From Selaginella moellendorffii (taxonomy: Eukaryota; Plantae; Lycopodiophyta), in contig NW_003314288.1 of assembly GCF_000143415.4 (NCBI RefSeq), forward strand, positions 84,002 through 148,001: a DNA stretch of 64,000 nt, written 5' to 3'. The notes beneath the pieces were generated by a model. The model searched no databases and was not told the DNA's origin. It was given only the letters and a program-made list of their open reading frames with translations. Positions within the stretch are counted from its first letter, which is position 1. Every line of letters starts with the position of its first letter. The position numbers were made by a program, and so were the translations under genes. This document shows positions 13,030 through 38,675 of this stretch, one piece after another.

Positions 13030-13113
13030 ATGCTCATCATGTTTGTAATGCTTGCCATAGGCATGGACGTAGGAGGAATCTCACCTAGAGGATGGCGCTG
13101 GTATGGATCGTAA
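13030..13113 (+). pseudogene. Remnant of Trp/Cys-rich peptide gene family
   Basis: Translates MLIMFVMLAIGMDVGGISPRGWRWYGS*. Upstream 12895-12935 resembles the promoter region at 15938-15975. Confidence 0.65.
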
Positions 13114-13399
13114 GTTTCCTCTTGGGGATTATCTAGCAATTTTGAATGTATAAATATGAAGAACAAGTTGAGGGAACACACTCACCATTTCCTTTTTACA
13201 GCAAAAATCCAATATGAAATGCCACCTTTGGAAACACTTATTCGCCATTGATAAATCAAAGCTCTATTTTGTCAGTAGAAAGAGTTTACTGTATCCTAGG
13301 AAAATGCTGGTAAAAGCAAACGAAACGATCGATGAGAGGAATCACTACCACGCAGATATACCAATTGATGTTAATTATGCCCACGTGGCAGTACTTTCC

Positions 13400-14178
13400 A
13401 TACATGTACCATTCTTAATGGGTTGTGGCTCACCCATTAACTTGATCCAACCGTTGGCAGCTGTCGGATCGAGTCAGGTTCTCTACGAGAACGTGGCTGA
13501 CAATTGCCAAGTTCTCCAAAACCTAGCTGTCAGCTGTCAGATTCTGGAGAACCAGGCTACCAGCTGCCAATTCTGGAGAACCCTCTCATCCTTGAATAAC
13601 ATTCTTTCACATGTTCGTTAACGGTCTCGCCACAGCCCGTTAAGGCCGTTCCCGGGCACGGCCTTGCTCGTTCCCTCCAGAACGCACTTGCTGGGCTAAC
13701 ACCCAGCTTGCCCGTTCTGGGCAGGAACGTGCTCGCCCTACCCAGGAACTGCCTCATATATAGTTGAAATACATAGAAAGTTCTTCCGTGTCTCTTCACA
13801 GGCTGTGGCTCACCCGTTAACTTGATCTAGCCGTTGGCAGCCGTCGGATCGAGTCAAGTTCTCTACGAGAATTTTACTGTTGTCAGCCACATTCTGGAGA
13901 ACGTGGCTGACAGCTACCAGGTTCTGGAGAACGTGGCTGATAGCTACCAAGTTCTAGAGAATGTGGCTGACAGCTACCATGTTCTGGAGAACCCAACTGC
14001 CAGCCGCCAGGTTCTAGAGAACCCTCTCCTCCTCCAATAACGTTATTCCATGTGTCCATTAACAGTCTTGCCACAGCCCATTAAGGCCGTTCCCGGGCAT
14101 AGCCTCGCTCGTTCCCTCCAGAACGCGCTCGCCGGGCTAACGCCCGGCTCGCCCGTTCTGGGCGGGAACATGCTCACC
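13400..14178. repeat. Direct dimer of ~370-400 bp, each with an internal 30-bp minisatellite
   Basis: TGTGGCTCACCC.TTAACTTGATC at ~13424 and ~13804. Unit GTTCTGGAGAACGTGGCTGACAGCTACCA(G) repeated. Confidence 0.85.
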
Positions 14179-14399
14179 CTACCCGGGAACTGCCTCTTCG
14201 CTGCTAACAATTGAAGCCTCTAGAACAGGCCGTGGACGATCTAGAGCAGCGTGCATTGTCTCTCAACGACGACTACGTGCAACTCCTTGCATAGAAAAGA
14301 GATTTGCGTCATGGCGCCAGGCTCCACACGCTCATCCTTCACCACCAATCCAACAGGTACCTCGCAAATCTTCTCATCCAGCTCTAAGGAAGGTGCGAG

Positions 14400-15557
14400 C
14401 GCGGGGATCGAGCAAGGCAGGTGTTTATCAGCCATCCATGAGCCTAACAGATTCTCCTGGAACTTGATGCTTGGCGCTTATGCCCAAAATGCGGATCTTG
14501 AGGAAGCAAAAGAGCTGTTTGCCACAAAGAGATATTGTTGCATGGGTCTCTATTCTCACAGCTCATGAAAACCGTGGAAACTTGGAGGAGTGCCAAACAT
14601 TGTTTGATCAGGTTCTAGAATGGGATGTAGTTTGCTGGAACTCGCTACTTCCAGCATATGCCCATAACGGGCATATGGATCAAGCAAGCCAGATCTTTGA
14701 TGGAATGCTTAGTTTCTTGGACTGTTATGTATAATGGGTATTCCAGAAAAGGTTTGTTAACGACGCGCTAAATTTGTTCATGAGAATCCCCGAAACCAAC
14801 GAGCTCGGATGAACTGTTCTTGTCACCGCATATGCCCAGATTGGGCATATTGAAAAAGCCAAGGAGGTTTTCAGTAAAATGCACACCGCGACTTAAGCTC
14901 GTGGAACGCAATGCTAGCAGCAACGTCCAGTTTGAAAGAAGCAAGGTCTCTGTTTGATGGCATGCCACAGAGGAACGTTGCATCGTGGTCGACAATGATC
15001 ACCGCACTGGCCGAGAGAAACCAGCTCCAAGAAGCTCGCATTCTCTCCATCGAGCTCCTTATCACGATGACGTGGTGTGGACTGCCATGATCTTGGCCTA
15101 CTCCAACCACGGCCACCTCGAAGAAGCCAGGAAGATGTTTGCACGGATGCCACAACACGTGATGTTTTCTGGCAGCATGGCAATGGAGGGCGAGGCGAGA
15201 AACGAGATAAGTTTCCAGGGGATTTTCCTGACTTGCAATCACGGTGGGAAGCTCCGTGTGGCACTCGACTACTTTCGATCTATGGTGGCGGAGTACAGTA
15301 TTTCTCCAAATGTGATTCACTTCCAGGCGATGGCAGATGTGCTGGGACGAGCCGGGCTGGTTGCCAAGGCCGAAGGTCTGCTGCTGGTGATGCCCTTCCA
15401 GCCGCATTTCCTCGCGTGGAAGAGCTTGATCAGCGCTTGCAAAGTTCATGGTAACGGCAAGAACATCAATGTTGCAGCTCGTGCCGCAGAGAAACTCTTG
15501 GAGATGAAACCAGGGGACTCTGGCGCTTTACGTGCTCATGTCAGCTGCGTCACATGA
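14400..15557 (+). pseudogene. Frameshifted PLS-class PPR gene with E-like domain
   Basis: FSWNLMLGAYAQN, DVVCWNSLL, VWTAMILAYS and MPFQPHFLAWKSLISACKVH lie in different frames. Confidence 0.85.
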
Positions 15558-16161
15558 GTCAACAAGTACAACATTTAATTAATAGAATAACAGAAAATAA
15601 TTATAAGTAAATTAAATAAGAAAAACAAATCTAATGAATAAAATCTTGATAATTATTGATATCACTTCCATTAATTGGTGCAGATTGCTCTAGAATGCCC
15701 AAGAGATTGTCAAGAGCCTGCCAGTGAGAAAAGACAAACCACTTTGATTAATGTTGCGGGTGACTGGAAGCGGCCGTACTGAGTCTGTGGTCGAAACGGA
15801 AGCCAAGGTATTACGTTCATGTTTATATTAGCATGGAAGTTCTATGGAACTTTGAATCAAACTCTTGTAAAGTTTTGGCAAAGCTAGAAGAGGAATGCTA
15901 GAGTGACTTTGAAGATAAGGATTTGAAGGATTGGAGAAGCATTATAGGAAAAAGAAGAATTGGCAAACACGGAACCACTTTTACTGGACTAACTTTCAAA
16001 TATTCTTCCAGAGATAAGAAATAAGCGAAGCCATCCCAAGACAACTCCCCAGCCACCATCTAAATTATGCTGCCTCGAGCTATAAATACGAGCCCCTCCT
16101 GCCTCACAGATCAAACCATTTCTCTCTAATATACAATCCTACTTAGTCTGAGCAGCAAATC

Positions 16162-16359
16162 ATGGAGAACAAGGCTTTCTTGGTGATATTTTTGGCGCTT
16201 GCCATGTTTGTGATGGTGCTGGCCATGGGCGTGGACGTGGGAGGAATCGCAAAGGCTGCTGCCCAGCGCTGCCAGTCGGGGTGGTATTGGTATGACAACA
16301 GTTGCCACCGTTGCCAGAGGGGTTGGGTCTGGTGCAACAATCGCTGCTGGCACAACTGA
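16162..16359 (+). CDS. Secreted Trp/Cys-rich peptide (65 aa, 2 modules)
   Basis: Signal peptide + GVDVGGIAKAAAQR-CQSGWYWYDNSCHR-CQRGWVWCNNRCWHN. TATA box CTATAAATA at ~16080. Confidence 0.85.
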   Translation: MENKAFLVIFLALAMFVMVLAMGVDVGGIAKAAAQRCQSGWYWYDNSCHRCQRGWVWCNNRCWHN

Positions 16360-16821
16360 AACCTCCCGTTTCAAGGGGTAAACCCCAGCATCGTTCCTCT
16401 GAATTCATCATTCTGCAGTGCCAGGGTCTGGAAAGAAGAATAGTTTTCTGTATGGCATTGCATGGGATCCAACAATAATATATAAACTGTCCAGGCCTTG
16501 ATAAAAAATGTCTGTTCTCTCTATTTCTCATCTGGATTCACAGTTTCATTTCAAGAGTTTACTTCATTTTGACTCCAGGCCTGCCGACTGAGTTTTTCTT
16601 GCGTGGCAGTTTTACTTCCTTCTTCGTGTTGCAAACTTCGTCTATGCCCCACCCAGCATTATAGAAAAGAGAAGGAATTGACAAACACGGAACAACTAAC
16701 TTTTAAATATTCTAGATGCCTTCCCAAGAGCATTCTAGCGTCTTGAGCTATAAATATGATGGGCATCACCACCTCTCTCCAGTATACTAGAGATTGTTTC
16801 TCTTAGTTTTTGCAGCAAGTC

Positions 16822-16930
16822 ATGAAGGACATGGGGCCATGGTTTGTTGTGATGATGCTGGCCATGGGAGTGGATGTGGGGAGAAATCGCAACGGTATGG
16901 CTGATGCCCTCGATAATGGCGCTGATATGT
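16822..16930 (+). pseudogene. Decayed peptide-family copy
   Basis: GTGATGATGCTGGCCATGGGAGTGGATGTGGGG followed by a frameshift. Promoter duplicated from 15938-16090 at 16655-16760. Confidence 0.6.
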
Positions 16931-16999
16931 CATAACCAGAGAGCTATAAGCTCCTCTGTGTGGTGGTTTCGGAGATCTTTTGCAAATTTTTGGCTATAA

Positions 17000-18639: not shown

Positions 18640-19030
18640 CTCTAGAAGTTCAGAAGTGAAAACTTCACAATATTGAAGACTCAAGTCTAGTTAATTTTGA
18701 TGGCTAAAGATTGCTGGGACTTGGTCGAGGGAATTGAAGTGAGACCTCTTGACACTTGACCTTGACTTTAAGAACTTGAAAGCAAATTTGTTCTCGCCCA
18801 AAAGTGTTTCTTTTTACACATGCAACCTAATGAGACAATGGCAACATACATCAAGAAGCTCAAGGGCATTATGCAACAGTTCAAGCAAGTGGGTAAAGCA
18901 ATCTCAAATGACTATGCAAAAGCTTTCTTGCTTCACTTTGTCTCCCTAGAGTTGTAACAATCATCCTTCATGCTCTCATTTATCTTAGCTCTACTCTAAT
19001 CTTCTAGAGGAAGAGCACAAGATTGCTGAG
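18640..19030 (+). mobile_element. Ty1/copia gag-like remnant
   Basis: KDCWDLVEGIEVRP resembles copia gag N-terminus; degenerate. Confidence 0.35.
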
Positions 19031-21508: not shown

Positions 21509-24018
21509 TTACTTGAGCAGCCGCAAAACATCGCCAACCAAATACAAAGAACCAGTGACCAAAACCTGAGAGAGAAACAACCGCTTACACCATAAAGAGT
21601 TTTAACCAAGTACCTGGAGATGAAGATTTGGATGGCGAGCGGAGCAAAAGCGCAGCCAATCAATGGCTGCTGGTAGCGATGGCATCACTGCACTGGAAAC
21701 TCCAAAATGGCATGAGCTATAGCCGTTTTCCAGGCCGGAAAGAAACTCTCGACGATAGTCTCCGGCTTTCGAATCTGCAAGATAACTCGCAAGCACTTCC
21801 AGTTGGAAAACTAGCTCGATATTTTACCTTTCTCCTTGAAGGACTCCCAGTGCTGCTGTAACACCTTTTGCCACGAGAGATCTGGATCAACGGGAGAATC
21901 GTGAGTGTTGTCAATTGACGTGTAGCTCGAGTACGGGGGTACGAATATCGCCAGCTCGAGTGAAATATCTACAAACAAGAAACATGAACTTTCAGCCAGA
22001 GAGCTTTGCTTCATCAAGTCGAAAAACCTTGTTGTTTGCAGATATCTAGCAAGGGTGGGAATAGAAGGTTGGGATCGCGCTTGGGCATGCAATTGAAGAG
22101 TAAGATCTACACAGACAAATAACACTGATATCGTTAGCCAACTCAACAAAATTCACCTGTCTAGAGTTCGAAGTTGGTGTGTTAAACTGCTTAATATCGA
22201 ATGCCGATATTTCTTCATTCTCTTTGTGGATGTTGTCGGCTCTAGCAGCGGAAGAAAACCACTTAGCACAGGCTTCCATACTTTCTGGGCTATGAGCCCC
22301 GTCCAGGTAGAAGCTTAGCTTCTTCTCACGGACAATCTCTGCTCTTCCTGCCCACCGCACTTCAACGAGCCCCTTAATGTATGAATCAGGTAAACGACCT
22401 TGCTCAAGAGCCTTCGCAACGAGAAAAGGAGGCTGGACTCTCAAGTAGAAGAGAACAATTAAACGCTTACCTCGTTCAGGATTGCTTTATGCTCTTGGTG
22501 ATCGGTTCTCTCCGCCCAGCCTCTGCAAAGCGCCACGGCAAGTGCAGCGTTGGTCCGTTGATGCTCTCCTTGCAGTCCAAGCTTTAAGTCTCCCAGATTA
22601 TAAGTTTCCAGAGGAGCAGCAGTTTCTAAAGGTATCTGCTCACAACGAATGCGTCAGTTCGGCCTAGATTTACACAAAAACAATGCCTACATTTAGCTCC
22701 AAAGCACGCTTCTTCAGAGCCTCCAATGCTTCAGCTGGCTGTGGCACTGTAACAGCTGGTACGCCTGCCTTCAACCGGTGCCAAGACGTCAGAAGAATAG
22801 ATAAATCTAGATACCAGTACCTTGAAAATCCCAGCCTTCTCCGTTGCAATTTCCGCGAGTGTGTTTCCTACAAACGAGCACGTCAGCAAGCGAACACGAT
22901 GATTTTAAAAAAAGGAAACCAAGAATCTCCATATGGTCGTAGCCGAGTGATGCTACTCCACAGATGGCTGGATTTCGAACCTGAGAAACAAAAGGACAAG
23001 TCAACTTCATCGGCAGCTTAGCTGCTTACCACATTGGTTGCATCACAGCGACCTCCTAAACCGACTTCCAAGATAGCAACGTCAACCTGTTGGTCACGAG
23101 TTAAGCCGTAAAGCAATATTAAAAAACATAGTCTAGTTTTCTCACATCCTCCGACGTAAACATCTTGAATGCCAAAATTGTGAGGAACCGAAAGAGACGT
23201 GGCATAGGGAGCCCCTGCTCGGCCTCATTTGCCTGCATTTGCCTATGAATTACAAAGAAAAAAGAACAAACCAGGTTAACCCACCTGGAGATGATCCCAA
23301 CACCACCAAAAATACTGGTTAAAAGTCTCCTCGGAGACCTCCTCCCTGGTTTAAACGAGCACTGTAAACTTGATAATGCCACCACAACACTTACCCGTTC
23401 AATCTAAATCGTTCTCTAATGTCTAGCAAATGAGGCGAGGTGAAAAGAGCAGTCCGGAAACCAGAAGCTCGCAAAATTCTCTCCACAAATGCACAAGTAG
23501 AACCCTGTCACAGACTAAGGCTCGTCAAAAAAGAAAGAAACTGGTTTTAAGTACCTTTCCCTTGGTTCCAGCCACATGAATTACGCTTAATTTCGATACT
23601 GGCTCCTCCAACCCGAGCAGCTGAAGGAGGAAAAAAAAAAAAGCTCGAGAAGAAACCAAAAACCGAAGAAAAAATGGTACCTTTAGATGGTCAGCAACGA
23701 GCTGGAAATGGTTCTCCCATCGGCTGCTATCGTGGGTGCTTGGCGAACGATCCAAATCCACCACTGCTCCCCCTCCTCCACGCTTCTTGGTGATTAGACC
23801 ATTGAGAATTTCGATAGCGTCCCGGAAGCTACGACGATGCGCCATCGCCAAGGACTGCGCACAACCCTACAGCAGGAGAGCACGACGACAAGCGAGTACT
23901 TTGACGCGCCAGGCTAGATAGCACTCGCTTTCACTCCACTCACCTGGGCGCCGGATCTGCGATCGTGTCCGCTCATCGCCGGGAGGATTCTCGAGTGGAA
24001 TGATTGAGCGAAGCGCAT
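21509..24018 (-). CDS. FPGS: Folylpolyglutamate synthase (multi-exon)
   Basis: [28 protein letters not shown] and C-terminal [19 protein letters not shown] probable first exon from ATG 24018 splices in frame (start uncertain; 23976 or 23845 are alternatives). Confidence 0.92.
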
Positions 24019-24417
24019 TTGAAATCACCGCCCTCTCCTAGGGTTGCCGGCAGCATTAGCCGATCGAGCTCCCGGGACCTGCATTCCACGGGAATCAATC
24101 GCTGGCGCTCGATCCGGCGCATCCAGCTCGCCGCGCCGCGCCGCGCGGATTCCCAGTGGCGCTCCTCGACGAGCATCATCGAAAAACCCTGGAAATATTT
24201 ACCAAGATATCGTCTACGTCTTTAGAGCGCGAAGGATAAAACAAAGGTAAATTTCTTAAAGAGCAAATAGACAAAAGATATCAAACTCTGCCAAACAACC
24301 TTGGCATTATTTACTTCGACACACAGTAAAAAAACGAAATCCAGTCACACAAACAAAGAACAAAGCACACACCATATAATCTCTTTTTACCATGTGGAGT
24401 AATGGTAAATTTCTTCC

Positions 24418-24789
24418 TCAGTTCTTGGAGCAGCCAGTACCAGTCCAGCTCCGCCCCAATGGGCACCGGTTGCAACTGTTGTTGTACCAGTACCAACCGG
24501 ACTGGCACTGGTTGCACTTGCCATTGTACCAGTACCACCCGGACAGGCACTGGTTGCACTTGCCATTGTACCAGTACCACCCGGACAGGCACTGGTTACA
24601 CTTGCTATTGTACCAGTACCACCCAGTCGGGCATTGGATGCACCTGCCACCGGACCAGTGCCAACCGGACCGACAGCTTTGTGCCTGGGCCTTTGCGATG
24701 CCATTGCCAATGTCCACGCCGATTAAGAGGAGCATGACTACCACTCCAATGAAGGCCACGCGAGAAGAGTAGCTCGCCACCATTGCCAT
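24418..24789 (-). CDS. Secreted Trp/Cys-rich peptide, 6-module variant (123 aa, 12 Cys)
   Basis: MAMVASYSSRVAFIGVVVMLLLIGVDIGNGIAKAQAQS + six C-x2-GW/R-x-W-x4-C modules. Perfect 42-nt repeats at ~24504-24597. Confidence 0.85.
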   Translation of the reverse strand: MAMVASYSSRVAFIGVVVMLLLIGVDIGNGIAKAQAQSCRSGWHWSGGRCIQCPTGWYWYNSKCNQCLSGWYWYNGKCNQCLSGWYWYNGKCNQCQSGWYWYNNSCNRCPLGRSWTGTGCSKN

Positions 24790-25589
24790 TAGCGAAGAAT
24801 TCTTCTTGATTGAGTTGAGTGAGATGAGAAAGATTTTGGAGAGAAGTTTGCTGTGAGAAGCTTTGATTTCTGGGATGGATGATGCCAATGAAGGCCGAGG
24901 AGGCATTTATAGTGCCGAGAAGTATGAAGAGATTACATGTAGAGTCAATTATAATAGACTTGTGGCCATGGTGTATACATGGTATATACAGGGGGTTTTT
25001 TGTACAGACTCTTGTTACTGTTTGAGCGGCTCTTGACTTGGACCAATGGAAAGAAGAAATATTGATAAGAATATGGCTAGCCGTGTTCTTCTGTTCTCTC
25101 TGTGGATGAATCATGTAATTTTTAGTAATTTTGTGTTTGTTCCAACACAACTTGGCCTGATCTCTGGTACAACATGCGTTCGTGTCCACTATAGTATACA
25201 TTACTTTTAGACTCTCTCGAAATTATTGCTTCTTCTTGGCTTGATCGGGTTGGGTTTTGGAGCTTGCAGACCAGGCAATTCCTATCTTATCCGAACACCA
25301 GCGCCGGCCAAACACCGCCAAAAAACTAAAAGACTGGTATAGATCTACGACAACAATTGATGCTGTAAATTGATTTTTGTGTTTACGGCATCAGTTGTTC
25401 TTGCTGTTCCGTTTGCTACGTAACAACACCAACATGAAATAAGGAGCGAAAGAACTGCCATCCAGGAAAAGCTCAGTGCCTGGAGACAAGAATCTAAGTA
25501 AACTCTCGAGATGAATTAAATAGTTTAATAACAACATTTTTACATCGCATCAAATCTTTTTATTCTTGGTGTGTTTGGGCTTAAAGACC

Positions 25590-25832
25590 TCAGTTTCTCC
25601 AGCAGCGGCCTTTGCGCCAGCTCCAGCCGCTCTGGCATCGGTGGCAGCTTCCGCCATACCAATACCAGTTTTTCGGGCAGGGGTGACAACGATTGTCATA
25701 CCAGTACCACCCTATCGGACAGCGCTGCGCAGCAACCTTTGCGATTCCTCCCATGTCCACTCCCATGGCCAGCATTATCACAAACATGGAAACAAGCCCA
25801 AGGCAAACCAGCTGAGTCTTGCTCATCGCCAT
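25590..25832 (-). CDS. Secreted Trp/Cys-rich peptide (80 aa, 3 modules; MSKTQL subtype)
   Basis: AAQR-CPIGWYWYDNRCHP-CPKNWYWYGGSCHR-CQSGWSWRKGRCWRN. Confidence 0.85.
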   Translation of the reverse strand: MAMSKTQLVCLGLVSMFVIMLAMGVDMGGIAKVAAQRCPIGWYWYDNRCHPCPKNWYWYGGSCHRCQSGWSWRKGRCWRN

Positions 25833-26912: not shown

Positions 26913-27062
26913 TCAGTTTCTCCAGCAGCGATTGTTGGTCCAACCCTTTCGGCAGCGGTGGCAATCATTGTCATACCAATACCACCCTCTCGGGCATCGC
27001 TGGGCAGCAGCGTTTGCGATTCCTCCCATGTCCACTCCCATTACCAGGAGCAACACAAACAT
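26913..27062 (-). pseudogene. Peptide-family copy with damaged 5' end (MDKIRL subtype); residual 49-aa ORF
   Basis: MFVLLLVMGVDMGGIANAAAQRCPRGWYWYDNDCHRCRKGWTNNRCWRN*. The upstream KIRLACLG is out of frame. Confidence 0.7.
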
Positions 27063-27642
27063 AGCCCAAGGCAAGCCAGACGAATCTTAATGACCAAGAA
27101 CATCTTAACATTGACGTACACTAAAATAGAAAGAGCGCCAAATATTCTTCAGAAATCTGGAATCAATCTATGCATGGATGTAGAGCTTCCAGCTTTTGGT
27201 AACATCATAAATGTAAACACAACTGATCCAAAGCAATATAAATAACTAAGTGTTTTTGTTTTGTCAATGAAAAGCTGTTTATTTTGTCCCGAGACTTTGC
27301 CATCCTAGTCTCGACGTGGAACTTAAAAGAAGATGCAAAAGCTCTGGCATGTGACACGGTAGTCAGGAGGCAAATTTGTCAACGAATCTGATCTCTTTTA
27401 CAGACTAAGTCTAGCAGTTTTACCACATACGGCAACACTTATACACGCGGAAATTTGCTCAGTCGTTGCAAGGAACGTATATAAAACGCCCCTCTCAATC
27501 GAGACGAAATCATCACTTACACTTCTCTTCTCAGGAACAGGTTAATTATGTGCTTGCAACTCTTTAGGATATGAATTTGATTGTGTTTCTTGTTCTTTCC
27601 ACTTTGCAGGTCTATAGAATGGCAGTTGGAAAGTTTGTTGGC

Positions 27643-27647
<5 letters not shown>

Positions 27648-27675
<28 letters not shown>
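27648..27675. repeat. (AT)n microsatellite
   Basis: Direct read. Confidence 0.95.
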
Positions 27676-27678
<3 letters not shown>

Positions 27679-27911
27679 AAAAATCCATGCATTTTGCGAA
27701 CGTTACACTGCGACAACCATTTTCCAGAAAACACACCATATTTATCATTGATAATCTCAGAGCCTGAACATCGGAATAGATTTCACACAAGATTCTATAG
27801 GACTCCAAAACATTCCCGTTTCCAAGCCACAGTTTTATTCTACGTAGTTCTTCACCCATTCGACATTCGCTCCCATGGTTCCAGGCCCCAGAGATCACTC
27901 ACAAACTTTCA

Positions 27912-28145
27912 TTAATTGACGCAGCGGCTGCCATTCCAGCGCCACCCACGCTGGCATCGATGGCAGCTGTTGTCATACCAGTACCAATTGCATTGCACGC
28001 AGCGAGATCCATTCCAGTACCATCCCCTGCGGCAGCGCTGCGCCACCGCCTTGGTGATCCCCCCGACCTCCACTCCCACCGCCAGGAGCATCACAAACAT
28101 CACAACCAGGCCCAGGCACACCAATCGAGTCTTGCTGCTTGCCAT
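27912..28145 (-). CDS. Secreted Trp/Cys-rich peptide (77 aa; MASSKTRL subtype)
   Basis: AVAQR-CRRGWYWNGSRCVQ-CNWYWYDNSCHR-CQRGWRWNGSRCVN. TATA on minus strand at ~28263-28271. Confidence 0.88.
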   Translation of the reverse strand: MASSKTRLVCLGLVVMFVMLLAVGVEVGGITKAVAQRCRRGWYWNGSRCVQCNWYWYDNSCHRCQRGWRWNGSRCVN

Positions 28146-28439
28146 AGCAATCGGTCAATCAATCGATCAATCGATTGGAATTGGAGAAGAGAGAAGGAGC
28201 AAACCAAAGCGAAAGAACAAAGGAGCTCTAGAGAGTGTGTGGGGGATTGTAAGAGATGTGCTGTTTATATAGCGTCGAGAGTGTGTGGATAGATACAAAG
28301 ACCGCGCAGTTCCAGGCCAAAGTCTTTCATTACAATTCGCGCCCACCATTTGAAAAGACTCAATTAAGGTTTGCATTTGTTAAAATCGGTCACCACTTGG
28401 CATAATCCGCAACGTTGAGTTTGGACGGTCAGGATTGCA

Positions 28440-28865
28440 GATCATTTTCTCTGTTCTTTAGACGGGAATGGGGTCTTCTCAAGTTCGGGGTCGCGGCATT
28501 TGGATTTCTAGGGCTCTTGCTGGGGAGTGAGGGAGCGGCGCGATTCTCCCCTTACATTTTATGCGTGGAAGGAATGTGGTGCTTGTCTCACTCTCATAGG
28601 TATTTCTCTCTTAGTTTTTGTTTCCTTCTTCTTAGACAACAATGTATTTGTTTGTAAGGGGTCCTTTGCTGCTCATGGAGCTCGCTGTGCTTCTCATAAA
28701 CGCTAGCGCACGAAAGTCTTAAATTACTTTGTTACTGCAGGTTTCCAGAGACCTCTTTCTCAATGCATTCGCACAGGCCTTGAAAATTCTGGTGTCTAGT
28801 GCTGGAATTTACGCTGTTACAGTCGGAAGCGACTGTGGAGCTGCGAGAGCTTGTCGAGAAGAACA
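28440..28865 (+). pseudogene. Heavily deleted copy of 5' part of the GT4 glycosyltransferase
   Basis: Matches pieces of 39040-40187 (GGPLLLMELAVLL, GIYAV.VGSD, LRELVEK). Confidence 0.85.
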
Positions 28866-29412
28866 ATGTTGCCACCAATGTGTTTTTTTCTTTACAGACT
28901 TTTACACTGTTTGACTTGGACCAACGAAATATGACCATTGGCTAGCTATGTAATTCTGTTCACTTTTTCGATGAATCATATAGTTTTTAGTAATATCTTT
29001 GTTCCAACTTGGCCTGATCTCTCGTACAACATGCGTTCGTGTCCACTATTCTAGTACATTCTTGTGGATTTTAAAGGACAAAACCACATACACCAGACTC
29101 TCTTGGCTTGATCGGTTTTTGGAGCTTGCAGACCAGGCAATTCTTATCTTATCCAAACACCAGAGCCGGCCAAATACCACAAAAAACTTAAAGATCAGTA
29201 ACATAATTCTTGCTGTTTTGTTTGCTACATAACAACCAAAGAACTGCCACGCAAGAAAAGCTCCATGCTTGGAGACAAGAATCTACTCCAGATGAAATTA
29301 AACAGATCACATTTATCCTAATTAGGATTTAGGAGGATCTTACATCATTCAAACAAAACCTTCCGATTTATGGTGTTGATAGATTTTTGGGCTTATCCAT
29401 GACTCCGGATAT

Positions 29413-29615
29413 CTAAGGTTTTCCAGCAGCGGCCATTGCGCCAGCTCCAGCCGCTCTGGAATACCAGCATTTCGGGCAGCGATGACAACCATTGTAATAC
29501 CAGTACCACCCTCTCTGGCAGCGCTGGGCAGCTTTGCGATTCCTCCCCCCGTCCACTCCCATATCATCACAAACATGGCAACAAGCCCAAGGCAAACCAG
29601 CTGAGTCTTGCTCAT
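29413..29615 (-). pseudogene. Frameshifted peptide-family copy (MSKTQL subtype)
   Basis: MSKTQLVCLGLVAMFVM and AAQRCQRGWYWYYNGCHRCPKCWY lie in different frames. Confidence 0.8.
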
Positions 29616-30339
29616 CGCTGGACTGCTATTGCGAGTGAAAAGAACAAGAAACCAAATAAGCACTATTAGAGAGCTTCAAAGATCTTCTGAGCACTGAGTC
29701 TGTTAGAAGAGAAATTGTGGAAATCTCTCCTGAGAGGGGTATCTATATACTCACCCTTGCGACGAAGAAAGTTTCCGCGTGCATTGTTTGTGGATAACTT
29801 TGTGGCTCATCCGTTGGTCTTGGGAAGGATCAGATTTGTTGACAATTTGGTTTTCTAATACGCTTTTCGTCCTTCTATAATATAATGTTAATTTCATTAT
29901 TAATGCTATTTTAATGTCATATCATGCTAAACCACCATTCACTGCTTCTGGTGCAAAGTACGAGCTAGATTTATCGGGCAATAGTTGCTCGGTTGCGAGT
30001 ATATAGACACCCTCAGCTCTTATTGTCGATTTAATATATGATATTAATGAAAATTTGGCTGGAGTGTTTGGAATCACTTCTACCACGTGGTCGATCAATT
30101 TGCAATCAGCCAGTAGCATCGATTGTCTCACCTCGAGGCATGAGTCGCGCCCCTGCCGGAAAAACAGAGATCTCCGGGATCATGGATAAGCACAAAAATT
30201 TATAACTCAAGAATCAACACCATAACTCGTAAGGTTTTTCATGTTCACCAGGATCTTCTGAATATCTATGCTGTTTTAGATCTTGTGTATTAGAATAATA
30301 AAAAAATTCATCCGATGTAAAAATGTTGTTTGTGTGGTC

Positions 30340-31990
30340 AGGTCATTCAGCTTTTCTTGGGTGACGGTTGCTTCTCTCCTTTTGTCATGTTGGTGTTGTT
30401 ATGTAGCAAACTGAATAGCAAGAATAATTGATGCCGTAAACACAAATACCAGTTTACGGCATCAATATTTCTAGTAGATCTATACCATTTTATTGTTTGG
30501 CGGTTTTTGGCCGGCGCCTGATCTGCAAGCTCCAAAACCCAACCCGATCAAGCCAAGAAAAAGCAATAATTTCAAGAGTATGTGGCTTTGTCCTAACTAA
30601 ATAATGTACTAGAAGCTCATAATATAGTGGATACGAACGCATGTTGTACCAGAGAGCAGGTCAAGTTGTGTTGGAACAAACATAAAACTACTAAAAATTA
30701 TATGATTCATTGAAAGAGTGAACAGAAGAATCATATTCTTATCAATATTTCTTCTTTCCCTTGGTCCAAGTCAAGTATTATAGGTCAAGCCGCGGAGGTA
30801 ATGGAGAAGTTGGTTTGCCACGAGAGACTTTTAATTCAAAGAGTGTTGGAAACACAAGGTATGCTCTCGATCTGCGTCCCAGTGATCGATTAGATCCAAT
30901 CTTTTGTTAAAGTAAATATAATATACTACCATATTATTAACAGACTTCGTCAAATCGAGAAGGATCGTCGTACTTAGGAAACCAAGTTGTCAACGAATTT
31001 GATCCTTCCCAAGACCAAGTCTCCAAGTAAAATCGGCGCGTCAACCGCTGCCAAAAAACCACGAGGAAACTTGCTCGGTTGTTATAGAGAGACTCCCTCT
31101 TCTATCCAGAGGATCCGCAGAGACTCCTTGTTCTTTTTACTTGCAGTAGCAGTGTGTTCAGAGGTAGGATCTGGTCCAGCTACAATTCGGACTTATCTAA
31201 GTCTCGACGTGTACACAGTAGCACCCAGGAGGTAGTACCCAGGAGGCAGATTTGAATCTGATCTCTTTTCCAGACTAAGTCTAGCTAACACGATTGCTCG
31301 GTCGTTGCAGGGGGCGTATATATAACGCGCCTCACTCTATCAAGACGAAATCACCACACTTACACTTCTCTTATAATCCACAGGTTTTACTCTTAGAGTG
31401 GCAGCAATGGCGATGGACAAAATTCGTCTGGCTTGCCTTGGGCTTGTTGCCATGTTTGTGTTGCTCGTGATTATGGGAGTGGACGTGGGAGGAATCGCAA
31501 ACGCTGCTGCCCAGCGCTGCAAGTCGGGGTGGTATTGGTATGACAATGGTTGCCACCGTTGCCCGAGGGGGCGCAAAAATCGCTGCTGAAGCCTCTGCTT
31601 TTAAGGGGTAAGCGCAATTCTCAATTCAACTCGTAATCTCTATGAGTGCATTGCCAGGGTCTGGAAACAAGAATAAAAAGACACCGGACTGGTAACATGT
31701 TTGTGTGGAACAAATAAAATATATTTTTGTTTTTTTCTTTCTCTTTTTGTTTTTTTGTTTTTTCTTTTTTTGCTTCATCTCGAGAGTTTTGAGCTCCCGT
31801 GGCAATACTTCCTCATCGTCTAGCAACCTTTCTTCTTGGTTTACAAACTAGAAAATTAAGCTTTTTGGATCAATGGCTATCTTCGTGTTGGGAATGGAAC
31901 CCATGTTGTGAGACAACCACATGATTTGCAGGTGGAAGTAACTCGCATGATGAAGCCGGCTACGAACGCATTATCGAGCAACATTAGGTT
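30340..31990. repeat. Inverted segmental duplication of parts of 25030-27500
   Basis: e.g. TCTGCAAGCTCCAAAACCCAACCCGATCAAGCCAAGAA (~30522) is the reverse complement of ~25232-25270. 31600-31960 mirrors 26590-26905. Confidence 0.85.
31407..31589 (+). CDS. Secreted Trp/Cys-rich peptide (60 aa; MDKIRL subtype, inverted copy)
   Basis: MAMDKIRLACLGLVAMFVLLVIMGVDVGGIANAAAQRCKSGWYWYDNGCHRCPRGRKNRC. TATATAA at ~31318. Confidence 0.8.
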   Translation: MAMDKIRLACLGLVAMFVLLVIMGVDVGGIANAAAQRCKSGWYWYDNGCHRCPRGRKNRC

Positions 31991-32059
31991 CGAGATAGTC
32001 GGAGGACCTCTTTTGTTCCGTTTGGATTCGGTGCCACAGATAATCACGCAAGTAGCAGG

Positions 32060-32250
32060 ATCTCTGGCATCAGTGGCAACTTCCGCCATACCAATACCAG
32101 CTTTTCGGGCACCGGTAACAACCATTGTCATACCAGTACCACTGGCAGCGCTTGGCAGCAACCTTTGCGATTCCTCGCATGTCCATTCCCATGGCCACAA
32201 ACATGGCAAGGCGAACAAGGCAAACCAGGCAAACCAGTTGAGTCTTGCTT
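32060..32250 (-). pseudogene. Peptide-family copy, no ATG, premature stop
   Basis: SKTQLVCL...AAKRCQWYWYDNGCYRCPKSWYWYGGSCH*CQR. Confidence 0.75.
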
Positions 32251-32352
32251 TGCTCTATACTCGAAAAGAACAAGAATCCAAGATCTTCTGAAAGGAAACT
32301 TGTATTGATTTGATTATGGTTTTTTGTTCTTTTCTCTTGCAGAGTGGCAGCA

Positions 32353-32390
32353 ATGGCGATGGACCAATGGCTGCCACCGTTGCCAGACAA
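32353..32390 (+). pseudogene. Internally deleted peptide-family stub
   Basis: GTGGCAGCAATGGCGATGGAC, as at 31398, joined directly to CAATGGCTGCCACCGTTGCC. Confidence 0.6.
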
Positions 32391-32949
32391 ACTGGGATTA
32401 GAATAGTTTGAGCTGCGAAATATATTTTCTCTATTAATCTCTAAAGATTAAGCTTGGCTCACGATCAATATAACACTACCAACATTATAATATAGACATG
32501 TATCCAGAGCTAGCTAACCAGTGTAGCTACGACAGACTTTGTCAAGTCGATGTGGAAGGACAAATAGCTTTACTTCCGTATTATCGAGAGTACTACGTAC
32601 TTAGAAAACCAAATTGCCAGCGGATCTGATCCTTCCAAGACCAAGTCTAGCAAACGGCAAAGTTATCCGCGAACAATGCTAGCAGAAACTTGTTAACATA
32701 GATTGGCTTTTTCACACCCCAAAAGCTCATTAAAGGGCAGTAATATAGGTATAAATACACTTTTAATTGTGGCTGACAACTTTCCAGAAAACAGACCATA
32801 TTTATCATTGATAGTCTCAGAGCAGATTTCACACAAGATTCTATAGGACTCCAAAACATTCTCGTTTCGAAGCCACAGTTTTATTCTATGTACTTCTTCA
32901 CCCATTCGACATTCGCTGGCAGGCCCCAGAGATCACTCACAAACTTTCA

Positions 32950-33183
32950 TTAATTGACGCAACGGCTGCCATTCCAGCGCCACCCACGCTGGCATCGATG
33001 GCAGCTGTTGTCATACCAGTACCAATTGCATTGCACGCAGCGAGATCCATTCCAGTACCATCCCCTGCGGCAGCGCTGCGCCACCGCCTTGGTGATCCCC
33101 CCGACCTCCACTCCCACCGCCAGGAGCATCACAAACATCACAACCAGGCCCAGGCACACCAATCGAGTCTTGCTGCTTGCCAT
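32950..33183 (-). CDS. Secreted Trp/Cys-rich peptide, identical protein to 27912-28145
   Basis: Same 77-aa translation; one synonymous difference seen. Confidence 0.88.
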   Translation of the reverse strand: MASSKTRLVCLGLVVMFVMLLAVGVEVGGITKAVAQRCRRGWYWNGSRCVQCNWYWYDNSCHRCQRGWRWNGSRCVN

Positions 33184-33489
33184 AGCAATCGGTCAATCGA
33201 TCGATCGATCGATTGGAATTGGATAAGAAAGAAGGAGCAAACCAAAGCGAAAGAACAAAGGAGCTCTAGAGAGTGTGTGGGGGATTGTAAGAGATGTGCT
33301 GTTTATATAGCGTCGAGAGTGTGTGGATAGATACAAAGACCGCGCGGTTCCAGGCCAAAGTCTTTCATTACAATTCGCGCCCACCATTTGAAAAGACTCT
33401 TGAATTTGTTAAAATCGGTCGCCACTTGGCATAATCGCCAACGTTGAGTTTTGGACGGTCATGATTGCAGATCTTTTTCTTTTTTTAGA

Positions 33490-35055
33490 TCGATGATCAG
33501 GAACGATCAAGCGCAGCGCAGGATTGCTATCGCTTGTCAAGCTCGGCTTCGCAGCATTTGGATTTCTAGGGCTCTTGTTGAAAGAGTGAGGGAGCGGTGG
33601 GATGTTCCTCCGCATGGCCTACATTTTATGCGCGGAGTGCTTGTCTCGCATGAGCTCACTCTCACAGGTATTTCTTGTAAGCAACCAAAGGGAACGACTC
33701 GAGAGACGGTCCATGAGGTTCAAATATAAAAGGAAAGGGCCTATGAACAAGAGTGCACCCCTTTTTTCAATCGGTTAAGGGTCTTGGGATATTTGGGGTT
33801 AAGTGTCCTTGGGTTTGAATAGTACTGGGCTGGGTGACTTCCCGGGAAGTCCAAATTTAAGAGCTTACATTTGGTATCAGAGCGGTCTCAGGTCCGACTC
33901 TGTTGGTTGGCTAAGGGAATCGCACCATATGTTGATTGACGTCTGGCTGGAGCGAGGCTCTCAGCTTCCGTTCACGAGGGCGTGAACTTGCAGGGAAGCA
34001 TAGTGGATTGTAAGTGCCCTCGTGAACTTGCAGGGAAGCATAGTGGATTGTAAGCAACTAAAGGGAACGACTCGAGAGACGGTCCATGAGGTTCAAATAT
34101 AGAGGGAAAGGGCCCATGAACAAAAGTGCACCCCTTTTTCCAATTGGTTAAGGATCTTTGGGTTTGAATAGTACTGGGTTGGGTGACTTCCTAGGAAATC
34201 CAAATTTAGGAGCTTACATTTCTCTCTTAGTTTTTGTTTCCTTAAGGATGTATTTTGTTGTAGGGGTCCTTTTCTGCTCATGGAGATCGCTGTGCTTCTC
34301 AAAACACTGGCGCCACTGTCCAGTGGATTACTATCAAAGTGATGAAGTTACCGAAAATCTAAGGAATCCTGGTGAATGAATAACTTACCTAGTCTTGTTC
34401 TTGAGTGAATTGATTCTTTTGGTTCCAGCAAAAGGAGAAGAGACTCTCCGCGCAGCGGTTGATTCGGACTTCGTTTTCCTCAAGTGGATCGATTCTACGC
34501 TCCCAAAGTTCTGTGGTGGATTCCCGGTCACTACTTCACGCTCAATTATGTCAACGTATGCCCGAGATTGCTGCAGTGATGATAGACTCTCATGCCACAG
34601 CCGAGTATTGGAACAACAGGACACAACAGCATCTTGGGTAAGGAATAGAGCCTTCTTTCGATATCTTACGATATGAAAGTGCGTGATAAATCTTTTTAGT
34701 TCTCCAGGATAAAGATCCCAAAGGTGCATCTGGGAAATAGCAAACATCTCACGGAAGCAGCGCAAATTCCTCTCGCTCGTCATTTGCTCCGTCAGCATGT
34801 AAGAGAATCGCTCAGTATTTCGACCGCGATGTTATGTTCTCCGCGATCAACAGTAAGCTCTACTTAAACTTTTAAGCATGAAAGTCTGAATTTACGTGTA
34901 TTGCAGGTATTTCCAGAGGCGAAGGCCAGGACCTCTTTCTCAAGGCAGGCCGAAAACTCTAGGGTCTAGTGCTGGAATTTACGCTGTTACAGTCGGAAGC
35001 GACTGGATCGGGCAGCCAAAGTTTGAAGCGGAACTGCGAGAGCTTGTCGAGAAGA
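33490..35055 (+). pseudogene. Second truncated GT4 copy, interrupted by Cassandra TRIM
   Basis: Colinear with 38980-40187 with deletions and frameshifts. Confidence 0.9.
33676..34218 (+). mobile_element. Complete Cassandra-type TRIM (543 bp)
   Basis: LTRs 33676-33869 and 34049-34218 (TGTAAG..CTTACA). PBS TGGTATCAGAGC (tRNA-iMet) at 33872-33883. TSD TTTCT at 33671-33675 and 34219-34223. 5S rRNA-like segment in the LTR. Confidence 0.93.
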
Positions 35056-36472
35056 CACCAATGTGTACTTTTAAACTGTTTGACTTAGACCAACGAAAGA
35101 ATAAGAATATGACTATTGGCTAGCTGTGTAATTCTGTTCATAATTTTTGGTAATATGTTTGTTCCAACTTGGCCTCTCTCGTACAACATGCGTTCGTGTC
35201 CACTATTCTAGTACGTTCTTGTGAACTTTAAAGGACAAAACCACATAGACCAGACTCTCCTGGCTTGATTGGGTTTTGGAGCTTGCAGACCAGGCGATTC
35301 TTATCTTATCCAAACACCAGTGCCGGCCAAATACCGCCACAATCTAAAAGATAAGTAACATAATTCTTGCTGTTCTGTTTGCTACATAACAACACAGAAC
35401 TGCCACCCAAGAAAAGCTCAGTGCATAGTGCCTAATCTACTCCAGATGAAATTAAACAGCACAAACACCTTATCGTTTTATTTTAATTAGGATTTAATAA
35501 TCACAAAAACCCCTCAATTGAACCTCTTACAATTATGGCCACAGCTGTGTCTTGCTAATCACCATTGTCCTCGTGCTTAAATAGCACATTCCCAAACAAA
35601 AGTTTGTAGTTGGCTTTACGCTCGCTCTTGGCAGCATAGCAGTCGGCGTTCTTCCCCAATCGTGAAATGACAGAGGACTTTGTCTTTGCTTCTCCCCAGA
35701 TATAGAATCTAGGTCACCCATGATGGCGGAAAACATCAGAAATCCCAACCGTATTTCTAACATGGAAATTTTAGGGTTCTTCGTTTGCCTTTGCAGGGTC
35801 CCCCATGACTTCTTACTTGCAGTAGCAAAAGGGATCTGGTCCTAGTTACACTTGAAGTGAGAACAAATGAAGGTCATAGACATAACATCACCAACATGAC
35901 AGTAAATATTTATTTTGGTGAGGTAGTATATAGTCGCCCTTGCAACGACCGAGCAAATTTCTACGTGCATTTTTGGCGGACGCACGCCGCATTAGAGTTG
36001 GAGACTTGGTCTTGGGAAGGATCAGATTCGTTGACAAATTGGTTCCGATAATAGTACCACAGATAATGGACAAGTAGCAGGCTTCGAATTCTCTGGCTAG
36101 TACATAGTACCACGCGGTAATACGGAAAAAAAGCTTTCCAATTTTGTTTTCTTCCGTTCATACCGATCTGACGAAGTCTGTTAGTCAAATCGTAGCTCGA
36201 CACTGTCATGAAATGGTTACTAACCTGTTCTATATTGACTTCAACAAAATATTGGAGCTAGTCGATCACCAGAAACACTATTCGAATTATAAAAGTCTTC
36301 TCCATTACCTCAGCGACTTGACCTATAATGTTGCTCGAGAAATCTCTGGACTGGACATCCTGGTACCATAAAAGCTCGGTAAAGAAAATCACATTCCCCA
36401 GTGAGAGCCCTCATCACTTTATTCTATTTAGTTTTTTTTTTTGGCATGATTTCTTACCAGATTTGCCCAATC

Positions 36473-36700
36473 TCAGTTTCGCCCGCAGTGGCCATTCCGG
36501 CTCAAATCATTCTGGCATCGACAGCAGCTTCCATACCGATGCCAGTTTTTCTGGAAACGGTGGCAACTATTGTCATACCAATACCGTCCTCTCTGGCAGC
36601 GCTGGGCAGCAACCTTTGCAACTCCTCCGCCCACTCCCATGGCCAGCAGCATCATCACAAACATGACAACAAGCCCAAACCAAATCATGCCTATCGCCAT
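36473..36700 (-). CDS. Divergent Trp/Cys-rich peptide (75 aa; several Cys/Trp changed)
   Basis: AAQRCQRGRYWYDNSCHRFQKNWHRYGSCCRCQNDLSRNGHCGRN. Confidence 0.65.
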   Translation of the reverse strand: MAIGMIWFGLVVMFVMMLLAMGVGGGVAKVAAQRCQRGRYWYDNSCHRFQKNWHRYGSCCRCQNDLSRNGHCGRN

Positions 36701-37526: not shown

Positions 37527-37700
37527 TCAGTTGCGCCAGTTCCAACCCCTCTGGCAACGGTGTTGTCATACCGATACCACCCCACTGGCAGCGCTGGGCC
37601 GCATGCTTGCGATTCCTCCCACGTCGACGCCCATTACCAGGAGCAACACAAACATGCGGATGAGCCCAAGGCCAGCCACACGAATCTTGTCCATCCCCAT
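37527..37700 (-). pseudogene. Frameshifted peptide-family copy (MDKIR subtype)
   Basis: MGMDKIRVAGLGLIRMFVLLLVMGVDVGGIA, then a shift before AAQRCQWGWYRYDN. Confidence 0.8.
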
Positions 37701-37885
37701 CGCTATAGACTTCAGTGCCACTGAATGAACAAGAAACAATATCCTAAAGAGTTAAAATCATATAACCTGGAGTTGGATCTTGAGAAAAGAAGACACGACC
37801 AGGCAACTTATATTGATTGCTGTAGAGATCAGATTCGACGACAAATTTGTCTGAGTCATATGGAATAGATTTTCCAAAATTAGTA

Positions 37886-37967
37886 ATATATATACATACA
37901 TACATATACACATACATACATATATATATACATACATATATATATACATACATATATATACATATAT

Positions 37968-37998
<31 letters not shown>

Positions 37999-38008
37999 TA
38001 AATATATA
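37886..38008. repeat. Compound (TA)n/(TACA)n microsatellite
   Basis: Direct read. Confidence 0.95.
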
Positions 38009-38441
38009 AAAATTATAATTTGACTTAACCAAAGACTTGGAACTCTTGTATGTACACTCACTATAATGGTACCAAAAGCCAGACGCTTTACTCCAGATTT
38101 CTGTAACCAGATTCTCTGCTTCAATCTCAATAGTTGGCATTCTTTGTTTATTAGTATATATCTATATATATTTTTTGTCATTCTGTGCACAGCTGTTTAA
38201 CGTTTTTTGGCTGCCCATATATTAAAAATCCATACATTGCGAACGTTACACAGCAACAACTTTTTTCCCGAAAACACTCCATAATTATCATTGACAGTCT
38301 CAGGGCCTGTACATCTCAAAAACTTGAATAGATCTCACACAAGATTCTACAGGACTCCAAAACATTCTCGTTTCGAAGCCACACTCTTATTCTATGACTT
38401 GCTCTCCCCCAAAGATATCACTCACAAACTTTGGCGATTCT

Positions 38442-38675
38442 TCAGCGGCTGCAGCGGCTGCCATTCCAGCGCCACCCGCGCTGGCATCGATGGCAGCTGT
38501 TGTCATACCAGTACCAATTGCATTGCACGCAGCGGAATCCATTCCAGTACCATCCTCCACGGCAGCGTTGCGCTACCGCCTTGGTGATGCCCCCGACTTC
38601 CACTCCCACCGCCAGGAGCATCACAAACATCACAACAAGGCCCAGGCACACCAATCGAGTCTTGCTGCTTGCCAT
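38442..38675 (-). CDS. Secreted Trp/Cys-rich peptide (77 aa; MASSKTRL subtype)
   Basis: CRGGWYWNGFRCVQCNWYWYDNSCHRCQRGWRWNGSRCSR. Head-to-head with GT4. Confidence 0.88.
   Translation of the reverse strand: MASSKTRLVCLGLVVMFVMLLAVGVEVGGITKAVAQRCRGGWYWNGFRCVQCNWYWYDNSCHRCQRGWRWNGSRCSR

Follow-up and report, generated by a model that had tools for sequence, protein, structure and literature searches.

A tandem array of small genes encoding putatively secreted, periodic Trp/Cys-rich peptides in the spikemoss Selaginella moellendorffii

We describe here an array of small genes of the lycophyte (spikemoss) Selaginella moellendorffii, found in a 64,000-nucleotide (nt) stretch of RefSeq assembly GCF_000143415.4 (contig NW_003314288.1, positions 84,002 to 148,001 of the forward strand), hereafter called the window; all coordinates are counted from its first letter. 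By means of a six-frame list of open reading frames (ORFs), a motif scan and tblastn, 15 loci of one small intronless gene were identified between 13.0 and 38.7 kb. Nine of the 15 are open (16162 and 31407 on the plus strand; 24418, 25590, 26913, 27912, 32950, 36473 and 38442 on the minus strand) and the other six are broken by stops, deletions or frameshifts. Copies match one another by tblastn with E-values of 1e-40 to 1e-95 and relics with E-values of 1e-5 to 1e-29, which excludes chance as the origin of the array. When the family was compared by tblastn with the whole window, no copy was found outside 13.0-38.7 kb, the other matches being low-complexity noise. A preliminary description of this DNA had listed eight open ORFs and seven relics, and all of them were recovered at the same positions or a few bases away. 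Two of its assignments need qualification: g26913, listed as a relic, has an open frame and so is not broken, yet its leader start and promoter are gone and the term remains apt; g36473, listed as open, is indeed open in frame but has lost consensus Cys and Trp residues and is probably decaying.

The alignment of the precursors shows four parts, namely a charged N-terminus, a hydrophobic stretch, a linker and a series of modules. The N-terminus is positively charged (MAxSKTR) and is followed by 15-20 hydrophobic amino acids (aa) that form the h-region, then by a linker of consensus G-V-[D/E]-[V/M/I]-G-G-I-[A/T]-[K/N]-A-x-A-Q, in which A-x-A directly precedes the final Gln. The remainder consists of 14-aa modules, whose number per gene runs from 1.5 (g31407) to 6 (g24418), the very range given in the preliminary description for full-length copies. 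From 18 full modules we derived the consensus x-[R/Q]-C-x-x-G-W-Y-W-[Y/N]-[G/N/D]-[N/G/S]-[R/K/S]-C; Cys is invariant across these modules, and G, W and W are kept in 16-17 of the 18. The resulting Cys spacing is 10-2-10-2-10, with some middle or last modules shortened to 8, 7 or 6-3. If the precursors were cut after A-x-A, the mature peptides would measure 25-87 aa, with a net charge of +3 to +8, an isoelectric point of 8.8-9.8 and a Trp+Tyr+Phe content of 14-24%. The number of Cys is 4, 6 or 12 in all intact copies but one, g16162, where it is odd (5).

Three copies form the g27912 subfamily. g27912 itself (27912..28145, minus strand) is an intact coding sequence (CDS) of 77 aa with three modules and six Cys, and has the highest expression of the copies examined. 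g32950 (32950..33183, minus) is its recent duplicate, with an identical protein, a single synonymous difference and low transcription, and g38442 (38442..38675, minus) is an intact CDS of 77 aa and three modules, with 10 synonymous and 6 non-synonymous changes relative to g27912. g25590 (25590..25832, minus) is an intact, expressed CDS of 80 aa with three full modules spaced 10-2-10-2-10. The longest array of modules is found in g24418 (24418..24789, minus), an intact CDS with six modules, 12 Cys and a mature part of 87 aa; its start is most likely the ATG at 24789, which gives MAMV... as in g25590 and g31407, rather than that at 24906, and it contains a 42-nt tandem repeat (24482..24670, minus; 4.5 copies, 87% matches). 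Both plus-strand copies are intact ORFs: g16162 (16162..16359) encodes 65 aa with two modules and five Cys and has a TATA box at -81, and g31407 (31407..31589) encodes 60 aa with 1.5 modules and four Cys and has a TATA-like box at -90. g36473 (36473..36700, minus) is an open ORF of 75 aa in which C is changed to F, and W to R or H, at consensus sites. g26913 (26913..27074, minus) is truncated at its 5' end and nearly silent.

The six broken copies are decayed in different ways. The relic at 13003..13185 (plus) keeps the leader and part of the linker, beyond which a deletion reaches into the first module and a stop follows, and the one at 16837..16920 (plus) keeps the leader up to a frameshift past GVDVG. 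Frameshifts interrupt the relic at 29420..29618 (minus), which is silent in RNA; at 31956..32252 (minus) the leader is damaged and an in-frame stop lies past module 2. A fragment of the last modules with a stop is present at 32348..32416 (plus). Finally, at 37530..37700 (minus) an intact leader precedes a frameshift in the linker and then a stop.

Transcription was examined on positions 24200-30100 with reads from three stranded RNA sequencing (RNA-seq) runs (X29, X30 and X31), which share a species label and come from one study, and with one transcriptome-like contig set; 12% of each RNA-seq run was used for the depth figures. g27912 is covered at a mean depth of 28, 46 and 470 in X29, X30 and X31, respectively, has no intron and is matched at 100% by a 364-nt Logan contig. 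For g25590 the depth is about 1.5, 1.5 and 12 in the same order, and this copy is carried, in part or for the most part, by 10 transcriptome-like runs from four studies. g24418 is weakly expressed, at a depth of 3.7 in X30 only (one run of the three). Depth does not exceed 0.4 on g26913 and 0.3 on the relic at 29420, and is 0 in intergenic bins. First mates fall on the plus strand for the minus-strand peptide ORFs, and the neighbouring plus-strand transcript (28337-28930), which has a GT..AG intron on the plus strand (28597/28657), shows the opposite read orientation, so the library is stranded and the peptide RNAs are sense. Since no read joint occurs inside them, the peptide transcripts are intronless. 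The read ends delimit the g27912 transcript at 27756..28226 (minus), with a 5' pile-up at 28222/28226 and 3' pile-ups at 27815 and 27756, and hence an mRNA about 410-470 nt long, in which the 5' untranslated region (UTR) measures at least 81 nt and the 3' UTR about 100-155 nt; an AATAAA signal lies 72 nt past the stop and about 20 nt before the major 3' end. A consensus of loose-end reads at 27882 equals the sequence of 32906-32919, which indicates that g32950 is also transcribed, at a few per cent of the g27912 level. Sense, unspliced RNA is thereby found for g27912, g25590, g24418 and g32950. The 10-20 fold differences in expression among the runs of one study are as expected of an induced or tissue-specific gene.

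The intact copies also have promoters of their own. A TATA box (TATATAA, 28265..28271, minus) lies 126 nt 5' of the g27912 ATG and is kept in g32950 and g38442; at this distance from the ATG the three copies of the subfamily share an upstream block with CTATATAAA, which is located about 40-45 nt upstream of the outermost g27912 reads. The TATA boxes of g16162, g24418 and g31407 lie at -81 to -128, and a block TTGCTCGGTCGTTGCA..GTATATA is conserved among g25590, g36473 and g31407. No TATA box or conserved promoter block was found in the region upstream of the truncated g26913, and TATA boxes are confined to intact copies. Family members are thus transcribed as mRNAs of about 0.45 kb, each from a TATA-box promoter of its own.

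The coding sequence is under purifying selection. Ratios of non-synonymous to synonymous substitution rates (dN/dS) calculated by the Nei-Gojobori method are 0.14-0.65 for all pairs, and pooled values are 0.50 for the N-terminus and h-region, 0.16 for the linker and 0.20 for the mature part. Between g27912 and g38442, the 10 synonymous and 6 non-synonymous changes compare with an expectation of about 1:3.6 (Fisher p = 3e-4). The preliminary description had named neutral evolution together with missing transcripts or peptides as grounds for giving up the family; the genes prove to be expressed and selectively constrained. Transcription, promoters and selection, three independent lines, all mark these loci as genuine genes. 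The synonymous distance (dS) is 0 for the pair g27912/g32950, 0.2-0.5 within subfamilies and saturated between subfamilies, so the duplications are of many ages, and this range together with the six relics establishes the birth-and-death evolution that had been proposed for the array. By self-comparison of the window, the youngest units are about 0.9-1 kb long, at 27.7, 32.8 and 38.2 kb, and were copied with the adjacent 5' end of a glycosyltransferase gene. Gene conversion limited to the CDS was considered for g27912 and g32950 and rejected, because near-identity spans about 550 bp including promoter and UTRs, as in a recent duplication. Within genes, the number of modules changes by slippage or unequal exchange of the 42-nt repeat that encodes the 14-aa module. 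The family therefore grows and decays through tandem gene duplication, duplication of the 42-nt module and pseudogenisation.

A structure was predicted with AlphaFold2 from a family alignment of eight sequences. For the linker followed by six modules, the mean predicted local distance difference test (pLDDT) score is 76, and about 80 over the modules. The model contains twelve short strands for the six modules, that is, one beta-hairpin per module, which agrees with the Trp-rich hairpin suggested in the preliminary description. In each predicted hairpin, strand 1 is G-W-Y-W-Y, the turn is [N/D/G]-[G/N/S] and strand 2 is x-C-x-x. The full g27912 precursor is modelled as one helix (residues 3-34, leader and linker) followed by hairpins. 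A disulfide would be formed within each module, C(i)-C(i+11) (C-x10-C); we infer this pairing because it is the sole scheme that pairs all Cys at two, three and six modules.

We then compared the family with known peptides, domains and folds. With six family members searched against Pfam at E <= 10, no plant antimicrobial or signalling peptide family was retrieved, nor any CBM1, CBM14 or CBM18 (hevein) model. The claim that the Cys pattern fits none of defensin, thionin, hevein, knottin, snakin, LTP or RALF stands on this result. Individual candidates were rejected as follows: plant defensins (CS-alpha-beta), with no match at E <= 10, a mature model that is helix-free and a Cys spacing of 10-2-10-2-10; thionin, hevein, knottin/cyclotide, snakin/GASA, nsLTP and RALF, with no Pfam match and intact copies that lack CC or CxC; and alpha-hairpinins, which place C-x3-C on two helices, whereas the junctions are C-x2-C here and the predicted structure is all-beta. 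Below threshold, the best Pfam scores were obtained with Furin-like_2 (PF15913; 16.7 bits against a gathering cut-off of 28, E = 0.0084, for g24418), Ephrin_rec_like/GCC2_GCC3 (PF07699; 15.2 bits against 23.1, E = 0.019) and TNFR_ELAPOR1_6th (PF23091; 15.6 bits against a cut-off of 33.2; TNFR also PF00020), together with a few DUFs.

Structural searches pointed in the same direction. No Foldseek match against the PDB was found at E <= 0.001, all E-values being at least 0.1; the weak rows include a Chlamydomonas mastigoneme, 4-1BB, HVEM and OX40 (E 0.2-0.6 and template-modelling (TM) scores of 0.25-0.32 for these three), R-spondin furin repeats, ELAPOR1, the Cys-rich region of the insulin and IGF1 receptors, and choline-binding proteins. 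VIA-align gave Z scores of at most 3.4, with the cysteine-rich domain of class C G-protein-coupled receptors and TNFR modules (2.1-2.6 for the latter), and a shape search of the ESM Atlas returned furin/TNFR-type families again (TM <= 0.39). The PDB sequence search produced only chance LIM-domain rows (E >= 0.23), and the feature (language-model) search of the ESM Atlas reached at best 0.77, for a 'peritrophin-A' entry, below the level of a lead.

The furin-like, GCC2_GCC3, TNFR and NCD3G repeats, together with those of Giardia VSP and protist CxxC proteins, were the sole families to come up, weakly, in Pfam, Foldseek, VIA-align, ESM Atlas and phmmer. They share with the module the pattern C-x2-C-x2-G-x-aromatic and have one disulfide-bonded hairpin per unit stacked into a rod, an organisation that may be shared by the spikemoss peptides, for which six hairpins are predicted from six modules. 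They are housed in large receptors or surface proteins, whereas the spikemoss products are peptides of 25-87 aa with a strict 14-aa period and a W-Y-W-Y strand. The module thus appears to resemble the furin/TNFR-type disulfide hairpin, below every membership threshold, and the similarity may be convergent.

When 1.84 billion representatives were searched exhaustively with phmmer, 174 matches were obtained. Apart from the single annotated relative described below, these are protist and bacterial CxxC-repeat proteins (VSP, Ephrin_rec_like, NCD3G or without Pfam family); one of them, P0003, scores 186 bits against Ephrin_rec_like and is a true member of that family. E-values of phmmer against such repeat proteins are inflated by periodicity, and we treated these matches as periodicity-driven or convergent and not as homologues. 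The top match, P0001 (728 aa, L001:1001-3187, on the 1.83-Mb metagenome contig ERZ25068400 ctg22155), consists of about 20 tandem 14-aa repeats C-N-R-C-P-x-G-Q-H-Y-Y-N-x-R, with the period and the Cys/Gly/aromatic pattern of the spikemoss module, and has no Pfam family at E <= 0.01. Because its neighbours on this contig are a thymidylate kinase gene and a DNA polymerase III delta'-like gene, P0001 is taken to be bacterial, and the bacterial origin of the best match favours convergence; P0001 is possibly a case of convergent evolution of hairpin repeats.

Analogies also exist among short peptides. Tachyplesin, protegrin and arenicin are cationic, cystine-closed two-stranded hairpins, a form that the cationic spikemoss modules, predicted to be hairpins, may share, and indolicidin, lactoferricin and the puroindoline Trp domain are similarly cationic and rich in Trp, Tyr and Arg. 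Peptides of these kinds come from animals or cereals and each consist of one hairpin of 17-25 aa; the spikemoss modules are unrelated to these classes in sequence and are joined 1.5-6 times without spacers. The Ib-AMP precursor of Impatiens balsamina likewise contains repeated short modules that are basic and contain Trp and Cys. In Ib-AMP, acidic propeptides lie between the modules (CC-x8-C-x3-C), each of which is released on its own, whereas those of the spikemoss abut directly and have a common CxxC junction, and for this reason they most likely stay together as one protein. The designed tryptophan-zipper hairpins (SWTWENGKWTWK) provide a third parallel, by analogy only, with a turn of Asn-Gly type after a W-x-W strand (WYWYNGK here); in the module the return strand has Cys, so a disulfide staple would replace the cross-strand Trp pairs. 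Of the features that mark secreted plant cysteine-rich peptides, a small mature domain, an even number of Cys (in all intact copies but g16162), expression, selection and a tandem array are present, and the hydrophobic leader is a putative signal peptide. Judged on sequence, we thus propose a new family within this known kind, with a distinctive periodic hairpin architecture.

The only relative found by phmmer is XP_024531936.1 (P0038), an S. moellendorffii protein annotated as 'putative pectinesterase 11', which matches the leader, linker and first module and shares 50-62% identity with the window copies over 45-52 aa. Like them, it has the leader, the GVDVGGIANAAAQ linker and 1.5 modules, and is true kin; unlike them, it continues with a poly-Asp tract and then a Pectinesterase domain. 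A pectinesterase gene was looked for in the window and not found, so XP_024531936.1 belongs to another locus; the fusion may be real or may be a merged gene model. Within residues 55-85 of this protein, the cationic modules are followed by a run of about 20 Asp, reminiscent of the acidic pro-domains by which basic defence peptides of plants are neutralised. When 5.8 billion clusters were searched by word index with g25590 and with the family alignment, no short annotated member was retrieved, and the same search with the XP_024531936.1 leader returned only XP_024531936.1 itself. By exact look-up, the window's own products are absent from a 15-billion-sequence collection, in keeping with the suspicion that such ORFs are missed by annotation, and the family was not found described when the literature was searched for its motif and for cysteine-rich peptides of Selaginella. 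Since window products and short members are missing from the public protein collections, the family is unannotated; from these searches it also appears to be spikemoss-specific and so far undescribed, as the preliminary description had supposed on calling it uncharacterised and lineage-restricted, its only kin among the 1.84 billion representatives being a fused model of the same species.

As to function, we tentatively favour, with a confidence that falls somewhat short of even, a defence peptide that would bind microbial surfaces through Arg and Trp, with an avidity scaled by the number of modules. In favour of this reading are the cationic and aromatic composition, the birth-and-death history of the tandem array and an expression that varies 10-20-fold between samples. 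The N-terminal hydrophobic leader would direct the product into the secretory pathway and would be removed by a cut close to the conserved linker, on the C-terminal side of AxA or of the earlier A-x-G. Each 14-aa module would fold as a beta-hairpin, with a W-x-W strand and a tight Asn/Gly turn, and would be closed by its own C-x10-C disulfide; the hairpins would stack head to tail into a short rod. Once released, this cationic (+3 to +8), aromatic-studded rod would act extracellularly on microbial surfaces, through binding of its Arg and Trp to the membrane interface or to polysaccharides of the wall, and its avidity would rise with the number of modules.

Several observations weigh against this reading. 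The selection is purifying and not diversifying, which fits less well the arms-race pattern of many defence peptides. The linker is constrained as much as the mature part, which is not expected of a disposable signal-peptide tail and suggests that the linker is more than such a tail. The h-region of 15-20 aa and the single helix predicted for leader and linker would allow the protein to stay anchored in the membrane, and the structural model itself comes from a small alignment. Finally, the one annotated relative carries a cell-wall enzyme as its fusion partner, which speaks for the wall and not for microbes as the target.

A further reading, possible but in our opinion doubtful, is that the 14-aa unit would be an unrecognised natural mini-scaffold, a concatenable, disulfide-closed hairpin of tryptophan-zipper type, used both as a free defence or adhesion peptide and as a targeting head on a pectinesterase, with the G-x-x-x-G-G/AxA linker serving as a processing or sorting signal. 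Slippage of the 42-nt repeat would then tune the avidity of the free lycophyte peptides. If true, the unit would define a class of plant peptides that is structurally new and has a maturation step of its own, and so more than one further orphan cysteine-rich family.

As the main alternative to a defence peptide, the Trp/Tyr strip might dock on polysaccharide (the plant's own wall, chitin or glucan), so that the window copies would be small free-standing carbohydrate-binding modules and the paralogous one a targeting head on the pectinesterase. Small carbohydrate-binding modules are similarly aromatic, disulfide-rich and all-beta, and aromatics make up 21-24% of a 3-10 kDa peptide predicted to be disulfide-rich and all-beta here. 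XP_024531936.1, in which leader, linker and 1.5 modules are joined through poly-Asp to the Pectinesterase domain, speaks for such a role, but this fusion is a single automatic gene model that may merge two genes. Choline-binding aromatic hairpin repeats do occur among the weak Foldseek rows; nevertheless, CBM1, CBM14 and CBM18 gave no match and the 'peritrophin-A' look-alike scores only 0.77, short of a lead, and we consider this cell-wall or glycan-binding role fairly unlikely.

Reproductive cysteine-rich peptides, too, are typically encoded in tandem arrays, and the products could be signalling ligands read by receptor kinases in development or reproduction, in the manner of EPF/EPFL, LURE or SCR. 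A small product of secreted type, strong expression differences between samples, purifying selection and conserved scaffold residues would suit such ligands. On the other hand, 1.5-6 near-identical modules are better suited to avidity or bulk action than to a defined receptor epitope, the cluster contains no receptor gene (its neighbours being PPR, FPGS-like and glycosyltransferase genes) and no similarity to known ligand families was found in Pfam at E <= 10, which makes signalling distinctly unlikely.

Partly orthogonal to the other readings is the idea of membrane-tethered mini-proteins, in which the leader would be an uncleaved type II signal anchor, the G-x-x-x-G-G motif would drive helix pairing and the hairpin rod would sit on the cell surface or in the endomembrane lumen. 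The leader could indeed be such an anchor because the h-region is 15-20 aa long; the positively charged N-terminus, the continuous helix that AlphaFold2 predicts for residues 3-34, the invariance of G-V-[D/E]-V-G-G, with its G-x-x-x-G-G motif, and the linker dN/dS of 0.16 agree with it. Yet A-x-A stands right before an invariant Gln, an arrangement that is a textbook signal-peptidase site, and the Asp or Glu with two Gly where the helix ends would be in place in a signal-peptide c-region, so we hold tethering to be quite improbable.

Finally, that these are transcribed but functionless ORFs, young duplicates that drift neutrally with no peptide made, is very improbable, because although 6 of the 15 copies are broken, one open copy is degenerate and the public annotation has no gene model, dN/dS is well under 1 even at dS above 1, Cys, Gly and Trp are kept in 16-18 of the 18 modules, and intact copies keep expression and promoters while relics lose them.

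Innate immunity and cell-to-cell signalling in plants rely in major part on cysteine-rich peptides, which are under-annotated and of which, to our knowledge, almost all known families come from seed plants. Whatever its function, the array adds an expressed and selected lycophyte cysteine-rich family that current annotation missed entirely; the public gene sets of a model lycophyte thus still lack intronless ORFs of 60-125 codons for which RNA support is strong. The strictly periodic Trp/Cys hairpin, with a copy number that varies among paralogues, is easy to synthesise and is an attractive peptide scaffold.

Other genes and repeats are interspersed with the array. The glycosyltransferase gene starts near 38990 (Glyco_trans_4_5, E = 7e-44 for 39256-39759), and its 5' end was duplicated with the peptide units at 28337-28930 (plus), near 33451-33730 and near 38920-39270; the one at 28.4-28.9 kb, a partial copy, continues to be transcribed, and GT..AG introns 28597/28657 and 28597/28739 are spliced out of its RNA. 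A multi-exon folylpolyglutamate-synthase-like (FPGS-like) gene with a weak Mur_ligase_C match (about 21800-23900, minus) splits the array between g16162 and g24418. Also inside the cluster is a PPR-repeat gene (14251-15557, plus) in shifted frames (ORFs 14251, 14471, 14911 and 14985), which is probably a pseudogene or has frameshifts or introns. Near it, a 30-bp tandem repeat (13892-14022, plus; 4.4 copies) makes up a repeated ORF of VLENVADSYQ type, with a related stretch at 13475-13755. Between the peptide genes, an interspersed repeat of about 250-600 bp occurs in both orientations with 73-77% identity (25032-25482, 28911-29331, 30339-30775 and 34876-35496); it contains pieces of ORFs, VPTQLGLISGTTCVRVHYS among them, is probably part of a transposon and may have favoured unequal exchange. 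Two units of the g27912 subfamily are followed immediately downstream by microsatellites, (AT)15 at 27646-27675 and (ATAT/ATAC)n at 37886-38008.

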